Notes under the pieces: model-generated
The model's database searches: none
Told to the model about the DNA's origin: nothing
Seen by the model: only the letters and a program-made list of their open reading frames with translations
In this document: piece by piece, positions 41,442 through 41,531 of the stretch
How the letters are laid out: every line of letters begins with the position of its first letter
Numbering within the stretch: position 1 is the first letter of the stretch
Position numbers and translations under genes: made by a program
Assembly: GCA_977030845.1 (NCBI GenBank)
Contig: OZ365110.1
Coordinates: forward strand, 41,168,001-41,232,000
Source: Fimbriosthenelais zetlandica
Lineage: Eukaryota
Length of the DNA stretch: 64,000 nt
Reading direction: 5' to 3'

Positions 41442-41465
41442 GACTTTTATAGCGGCTAAAATTAG
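41442..41465 (+). promoter_or_regulatory. Distal composite element with a MEF2-type site (CTAAAATTAG at 41456-41465)
   Basis: gacttttatagcggctaaaattag matches the MEF2 consensus CTA(A/T)4TAG; CCAAT at 41511; near-duplicate of 42224-42248. Confidence 0.7.
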
Positions 41466-41531
41466 CATCTACACGCATGGCTGAACCTTGGAATCAACAT
41501 ACAAGTAGAGCCAATGACGGCGGACCAAGTC

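Follow-up and report, generated by a model that had tools for sequence, protein, structure and literature searches.

The closest described system to the element considered here is the vertebrate MEF2-TBP double motif, described in 2026 in the KLF2 promoter, in the enhancers KLF2-41 and KLF2-66 (at -41 and -66 kb) and in KLF4-148 (Fleisinger et al., 10.64898/2026.02.04.703710). Elements of vertebrate KLF6 and KLF7 carry it as well; it is very rare genome-wide, MEF2 and TBP bind it, and both of its halves are required (10.64898/2026.02.04.703710). It depends on signals (ERK5, flow) and forms the code by which blood flow turns on KLF2 and KLF4, with several elements at each locus (10.64898/2026.02.04.703710). 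In promoters, the motif is found well upstream of the start site (110 to 134 bp in human KLF2), and the core TATA box is a separate one; the vertebrate motif functions at a distance from start sites, where it attracts little of the initiation machinery (10.64898/2026.02.04.703710). The human KLF2 promoter copy reads TTATATA-CCGCGG-CTAAATTTAG (supplement of 10.64898/2026.02.04.703710), and the mouse Klf2 MEF2 site is CTAAATTTAG. The spacer is precise: counted between the motif edges of the authors, it measures 3 bp, or 2 bp in a single zebrafish element (10.64898/2026.02.04.703710), and those 3 bp equal 6 nt between TTATATA and the MEF2 10-mer. No invertebrate reports of the double motif were found in the literature searched, which is no proof that none exist. 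Here we analyze two modules of this kind that lie on the plus strand upstream of a KLF2/4 gene of Fimbriosthenelais zetlandica, in a stretch of 64,000 nucleotides (assembly GCA_977030845.1, contig OZ365110.1, positions 41,168,001 to 41,232,000) that we refer to as the window. The distal module is our main subject; the original prediction, made from the sequence of the window, had taken it for a second copy of the proximal one and had suggested a dual promoter or a shadow enhancer.

In both modules, a short GC-rich spacer separates the TATA-like half TTWTATA from a site that matches the MEF2 consensus YTA(A/T)4TAR perfectly. The distal module spans 24 nt at 41442 to 41465 (plus strand), with TTTTATA at 41445 to 41451, the 4-nt spacer GCGG and the MEF2 site CTAAAATTAG at 41456 to 41465; reading the sequence returned the letters GACTTTTATAGCGG-CTAAAATTAG just where the original prediction had placed them. 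The proximal module, GACTTATATAGCGGTCTAAAAATAG, spans 25 nt at 42224 to 42248 (plus strand) and consists of TTATATA, the 5-nt spacer GCGGT and the MEF2 site CTAAAAATAG. The two lie 782 bp apart on the same strand, and their MEF2 sites precede the KLF2/4 start codon by 1145 nt (distal) and 362 nt (proximal). Their proposed likeness was borne out, since 22 positions agree with one 1-nt gap in the spacer, and GAC...TATAGCGG is common to both copies. A CCAAT pentamer followed by GACG is present, as had been stated, at 41511 to 41515 (plus strand), 46 nt past the distal MEF2 site, and the proximal copy is followed at 42261 to 42268 (plus strand) by the CCAATCAG box, its conserved partner.

Two statements about the surroundings of the modules held in part. 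The heptamer ATGCCTG, said to precede both modules, does so (41400 to 41406 and 42214 to 42220), but at different offsets of 42 versus 10 nt, and a gapped alignment leaves the two occurrences unpaired, so we treat this sharing as chance. The flanks were said to be otherwise unrelated, which is true downstream (z = 0.4-0.6) but not upstream, where a similarity persists after removal of the module (z = 3.3). The upstream alignment score beat all shuffles (0/200-300), and a cross-species control gave a mean z of 0.31 and a maximum of 2.33. The matching blocks fall within 41350 to 41391 (plus strand), with 41350-41368 resembling 42099-42117 and 41378-41391 resembling 42154-42169. This weak match may be the faint trace of an old local duplication or of a conversion tract.

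The modules are exceedingly rare in their own genome. The 18-19-mer common to both, TATAGCGG(N0-1)CTAAAAWTAG, was found at these two sites and nowhere else in the 447 Mb of the genome; the reversed pattern, as a control, gave 0 matches. The looser composite of TTWTATA, 4-6 nt and CTAAAWWTAG has 9 matches genome-wide; two of them are the window modules, and no KLF-type zinc-finger locus of the genome is near any of the remaining 7. The match between the two copies is no chance resemblance, being far beyond what chance would give. A transposable element or dispersed repeat was ruled out by the two-site module pattern, the finding that the inter-module stretch is single-copy in the genome, and the lack of any tandem repeat between the modules; no Rfam family and no transfer RNA were found either. 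The interval between the modules does contain an inverted repeat of 20 nt, 85% complementary (41602-41621 and 41932-41951), that encloses a 310-nt AT-rich stretch, and as this segment is single-copy in the genome, it is not a recognizable mobile element.

Ten other animal KLF2/4 loci were reached via KLF proteins, namely those of the brachiopod Lingula, the gastropod Haliotis, the bivalve Mytilus, the annelid Owenia, the nemertean Tubulanus and the hemichordate Saccoglossus, and four further loci that we designate L003, L005, L006 and L008. The original prediction had proposed conservation of both modules in related species as a check, and both modules were present in 9/10 of these loci, on the same strand and upstream of the KLF2/4 orthologue, with the copies 249-899 bp apart. 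The pairs are at 7067 and 7767 in L003, 9392 and 9792 in Lingula, 7635 and 8003 in L006, 7453 and 8352 in L008, 9493 and 9825 in Haliotis, 9469 and 9719 in Tubulanus, 9469 and 9812 in Mytilus, 9524 and 9809 in Saccoglossus, and 7946 and 8224 in L005, where the distal TATA half misses the one-substitution threshold. The pair is thus seen in protostomes and in a deuterostome. Both copies thus recur in loci whose surrounding non-coding DNA is otherwise unalignable, which supports the earlier argument for selection on the motif rather than recent duplication.

The frequency of the second copy was compared with a background made up of all other matches in the loci, 17 in 419 kb of strand, or 0.047 expected per locus. 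In 8/10 loci including the window, the 1.2 kb before the proximal copy contain a second copy on the same strand with at most one substitution (binomial P = 1e-9), and adding Saccoglossus as the eleventh locus makes this 9/11. Simulated 1.2-kb zones contained a match in only 0.1-9.6% of trials. Six cases had yet to be looked at when the pattern was settled (the distal copy of Lingula, Haliotis, Owenia, Tubulanus, Mytilus and Saccoglossus), and five of these six have a distal copy, with P of about 1e-6 from the same background rate. The distal MEF2 site fits the consensus exactly in 8/10 distal copies across species. The contigs of the species that encodes protein P0003 reach just 1.1 kb upstream of exon 2 and contained no module. 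A sequence designated L007 was considered as a transcript, and this was rejected because L007 is genomic.

The locus of the nearest relative, L003, encodes a KLF protein 58% identical to that of the window, and beyond the coding exons almost nothing aligns between the two. A non-coding block around the distal module is conserved between them (41444 to 41536, plus strand, aligned to L003:7066-7160). This alignment of about 95 nt scores 45, against a mean of 22.6, a standard deviation of 3.2 and a maximum of 35 for shuffles, and it is the only alignable sequence in the neighborhood of the distal module. Because the pair recurs across loci and the distal block aligns to L003, we conclude that the distal copy is under selection and the pairing old. 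Judged by this conservation, the distal module is a true second copy that evolution has maintained.

The motifs that accompany the two copies differ. An unbiased 6-mer scan covered the 130 nt past each MEF2 site in 9 species, with 836 6-mers tested for the distal copies. Downstream of the proximal copies, the top word was CCAATC, found in 9/9 species (P = 3e-12); downstream of the distal copies it was AGGTCA/TGACCT, found in 6/9 species (P = 4e-6, or about 4e-3 when corrected for the 836 6-mers). In Saccoglossus, which was added later, TGACCT lies 94 nt past the distal site. A half-site stands 29-110 nt downstream of 7/10 distal copies versus 1/11 proximal copies. In the window, this recurrent distal partner takes the form of a direct repeat with 5-nt spacing, AGGTCA gtgtg AGGTCA, at 41532 to 41548 (plus strand). 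The distal CCAAT at 41511, which the original prediction had counted with the module, has a counterpart in L003 only, where it is inverted (ATTGG) at the corresponding position, and it is missing from most other phyla; the recurrent partner of the distal copy is AGGTCA and not CCAAT. The distal and proximal copies are not equivalent, the one being accompanied by AGGTCA and the other by CCAATC, and these different partner motifs suggest partly different inputs rather than pure back-up. The sole proximal copy with a half-site is that of L006, where the module is followed at L006:8059-8075 by AGGTCA ccgcg GGTTCA, a direct repeat spaced 5 nt.

The distal element is probably an enhancer-like site of MEF2 input upstream of KLF2/4, adding to or backing up the proximal copy. 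The genome has one MEF2 gene, with a canonical MADS/MEF2 domain (G000:C1:35424470-35424589, minus strand), and its product would dock on CTAAAATTAG of the distal module. TBP or another AT-binding protein would probably take the adjacent TTTTATA, and a nuclear-receptor-type factor may use the AGGTCA repeat at 41532-41548. The distal element would in this way add to, or stand in for, the promoter-proximal copy 782 bp downstream. The proximal copy would work with a CCAAT box, as is typical of promoters, and the distal copy with nuclear-receptor-type AGGTCA half-sites. What the sequences show is the likeness, rarity and conserved pairing of the copies, their different partner motifs and the presence of a canonical MEF2; we infer binding and activity from the vertebrate work, and the enhancer rather than promoter role and the factor that would bind AGGTCA are inferences too.

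Several observations weigh against this assignment. Owenia has one copy only and is the sole locus without a distal copy among those compared. The distal MEF2 half is off consensus in L003 (CTAAAGATAG) and in Lingula (CCAAAAATAG), and the distal TATA half of L005 is degenerate. The spacers in the window, 4 nt in the distal and 5 nt in the proximal module, differ from the 6 nt of human KLF2pr (the promoter copy), KLF2-41 and KLF4-148. In addition, the composite pattern was designed after five loci had been seen, and the AGGTCA association was spotted by eye before the unbiased 6-mer scan confirmed it.

Shadow, or redundant, enhancers are a general concept that has been applied to developmental genes of Drosophila and vertebrates. 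The shadow-enhancer reading of the distal module is plausible, with a vertebrate precedent in the KLF2 promoter and its two upstream enhancers with the same double motif. As with shadow enhancers, two separate elements of one gene share the same core transcription-factor input. Unlike in a case of pure back-up, the window copies differ in their partner motifs.

Among the alternatives, the one that survives best, though we think it unlikely, is a second promoter, in which the distal TATA-like half would set a start at about 41480-41560 and thereby lengthen the 5' leader or supply an alternative first exon, with MEF2 as the neighboring activator. A MEF2 site may adjoin or replace the TATA box in some muscle promoters, which provides a general precedent. 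The TATA-like TTTTATAG has a CCAAT nearby, in the window and, inverted, in L003, and the element is on the gene strand in all species. Yet CCAAT is no conserved distal partner, and in the window it lies downstream of the TATA-like box, opposite to the usual promoter order. No conserved exon-like block or conserved splice donor comes after the distal copy, around which just about 95 nt align with L003, and every annotated orthologue protein starts in exon 1, which lies past the proximal copy. The vertebrate motif, too, works away from start sites with little initiation machinery (10.64898/2026.02.04.703710).

The proximal copy bears on the same question. A candidate core-promoter TATA box, TATAAGT, lies at 42408 to 42414 (plus strand), about 170 nt past the proximal module, and is conserved with L003:7934; the local alignment of 42408-42479 with L003:7934-8003 scores 34, which is marginal against a shuffle maximum of 33. 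By analogy with human KLF2, it is plausible that TATAAG at 42408 is the core TATA box, in which case the proximal double motif would lie about 200 nt upstream of the start, as it does in vertebrates. Because the CCAAT and the conserved TATAAG are both downstream of the proximal copy, that copy is apparently not the core TATA box. Since neither the proximal motif nor the human KLF2 motif appears to be a core TATA box, the TATA-like half of the distal copy need not imply a start site there. A divergent promoter on the minus strand (CCAAT, MEF2, TATA) was dropped, as the element has the same orientation relative to the KLF gene in every species and the 20 kb upstream contain no long open reading frame.

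We find it doubtful that MEF2 dimers occupy both AT-rich halves with TBP uninvolved. The TATA-like half is one mismatch from YTA(A/T)4TAR in several species, for example CTTTATATAG in L008, and MEF2-MEF2 double motifs exist in other enhancers (10.64898/2026.02.04.703710). In the window, however, the half spans just 9 nt between its C and its G, where a MEF2 site would take one base more, and the AT-rich neighbor in the vertebrate KLF2 elements was not bound by MEF2 in gel shifts (10.64898/2026.02.04.703710).

The original prediction had also compared the CTTwTATAG part to an imperfect CArG box, such that SRF on this box and MEF2 would co-occupy each module as a paired MADS site, and this we regard as very improbable. 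The AT-rich cores CTTTTATAG and CTTATATAG are superficially like CC(A/T)6GG, the box ends in GG in L006, L008 and Owenia, and the genome encodes an SRF orthologue in one intron-split gene (G000:C11:53183402-53187982, plus strand). As in CArG-MEF2 muscle promoters, there are adjacent AT-rich cores, and both MADS factors are encoded. Unlike in those promoters, the CC...GG frame is absent from the window and unconserved elsewhere. Both window copies have CT...GC, so that two of the four defining C/G positions are wrong, and across 21 modules the flanks of the AT core vary, with GC, CC, GG, CA or TG after the TATA core. The idea fails on these ends; what is conserved is the core TTWTATA, and TBP binds the homologous vertebrate half (10.64898/2026.02.04.703710). 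On its letters, the window module fits the MEF2-TBP double motif far better than a CArG/SRF box.

Separate CArG boxes were seen outside the modules. Owenia (L010, about 9791-9800) has a perfect one, CCATATATGG, about 27 nt past the proximal MEF2 site, and one-mismatch versions occur in Tubulanus (L011), CCATATACGG, and in L006, CCATATAGGG. In some lineages, therefore, the promoter may have a genuine SRF site nearby, outside the module.

The two copies of one species resemble each other more than they resemble copies from other species. Distal and proximal copies have a mean identity of 0.67 within species and 0.61 between species, and permutation of the within-species excess gave P = 1.3e-4 for nine species and 6e-4 for ten. 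No within-species excess appeared when the windows were moved by 60 or 120 nt, and these controls excluded an effect of local base composition. The rare CTATTAATAG is used in both copies of Haliotis, TTATATACCC is common to both Lingula copies, and TTATATAGGC-GTCTAAAAATAG is common to both copies of L008. Such likeness would fit occasional gene conversion or copy replacement atop long-term retention of two copies; an alternative is co-adaptation to lineage-specific protein preferences. That two 25-nt copies co-vary within species is also unusual, as an example of short regulatory sites whose evolution is linked.

The within-species likeness and the weak collinear upstream-flank similarity in the window (z = 3.3) are also what one might expect of a relic, that is, of an inert distal copy decaying after a local duplication of the promoter, to which we give very little credence. 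A neutral remnant would not recur in the same relative place and on the same strand in 9/10 other loci over several phyla, would not stay alignable with L003 while neighboring DNA does not, and would not bear a recurrent partner motif of its own.

The KLF2/4 gene itself has two recognized coding exons on the plus strand. Exon 1 (42601 to 42693) contributes 31 codons, beginning MTSMVDPLL..., with the donor GTAAGT at 42694, and its start resembles those of the annotated orthologues. Exon 2 (44394 to 45728) follows the acceptor AG at 44392-44393 and encodes three C2H2 zinc fingers and the stop codon. The best matches of the protein are lophotrochozoan. No gene-like open reading frame of at least 110 codons was found in the 20 kb upstream of the gene (window 20000-41400); KLF2/4 thus adjoins a gene-poor stretch, as regulatory-rich developmental genes often do. 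The intron contains a 33-nt block at 43970-44002 (plus strand), 94% identical to L003:9608-9640, in which CAG, GGCACCATGTGCCATGTCATGAAG and GTTAGT follow one another. This block may represent a 24-nt in-frame micro-exon or else an alternative first coding exon that encodes MCHVMK in phase with exon 2, and it was found in none of the annotated orthologue proteins.

A possible third double motif, TTTTATA-CCGG-TTATATTTAG, lies farther upstream at 35329-35349 (plus strand), 7.3 kb before the KLF2/4 start codon, and has AGGTCA about 104 nt downstream. Apart from the promoter zones, the background of about 420 kb yielded no other exact-pattern match. In L003, no alignable counterpart of this motif was found.

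From the presence of the pair in these animals, control by several copies, as described for KLF2, the blood-flow gene of vertebrates, would seem to be very old. Invertebrates without endothelium, among them a brachiopod, molluscs, a nemertean and a hemichordate, keep two motifs in fixed order and orientation upstream of a single KLF2/4 gene. If this is correct, the motif and its multiplicity would date to early bilaterians, these compact loci (<1.2 kb) would be natural systems for dissecting the need for two copies, and the AGGTCA half-sites would represent an unrecognized partner input at the upstream copy. A fuller scenario, speculative and in its entirety rather improbable, would have the tandem pair already at the KLF2/4 gene of the last protostome-deuterostome ancestor, with a proximal copy using CCAAT and an upstream copy using a nuclear-receptor half-site. 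The distal copy would then be the counterpart of the far-upstream flow enhancers of vertebrate KLF2 and KLF4, and the copies would have been kept alike by short-tract gene conversion or by repeated replacement.

With respect to the MEF2-TBP family, the window modules have the MEF2 consensus, the adjacent TATA-type half, the location at a KLF gene and the rarity of its described members. As in the human KLF2 promoter, a TATA-type half precedes a MEF2 consensus in the same sense-strand order, with a short spacer of fixed range, and the KLF2-41 and KLF4-148 enhancers carry the same two halves. Like the vertebrate elements, the modules are extremely rare, stand at a KLF2/4-type gene in more than one copy per locus, and have otherwise unrelated flanks. 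Vertebrate KLF6 and KLF7 carry the motif as well, whereas the six other KLF/SP-like paralogue loci of this genome, at about 10 kb each, contained no convincing double motif, one having only TATATA-type simple sequence. The spacers of the 21 invertebrate modules range over 4-6 nt, with 5 the commonest, which comes near the vertebrate value without equaling it, and that of human KLF2-66 is ambiguous, either 6 or 7. The copies are 0.25-0.9 kb apart in the invertebrates versus tens of kilobases in vertebrates, and their partners are CCAAT and AGGTCA in the former versus ETS, GATA and RBPJ in the latter. Human KLF2-66 does contain TGAGGTCA (AGGTCA), read by eye about 108 nt from the MEF2 side, on the side and within the range of the invertebrate distal copies, as a single case. 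The type of element is therefore known from vertebrates, and what is new here, with no mention in the literature searched, is a tight tandem pair conserved across phyla, with shorter spacers and a different partner motif.
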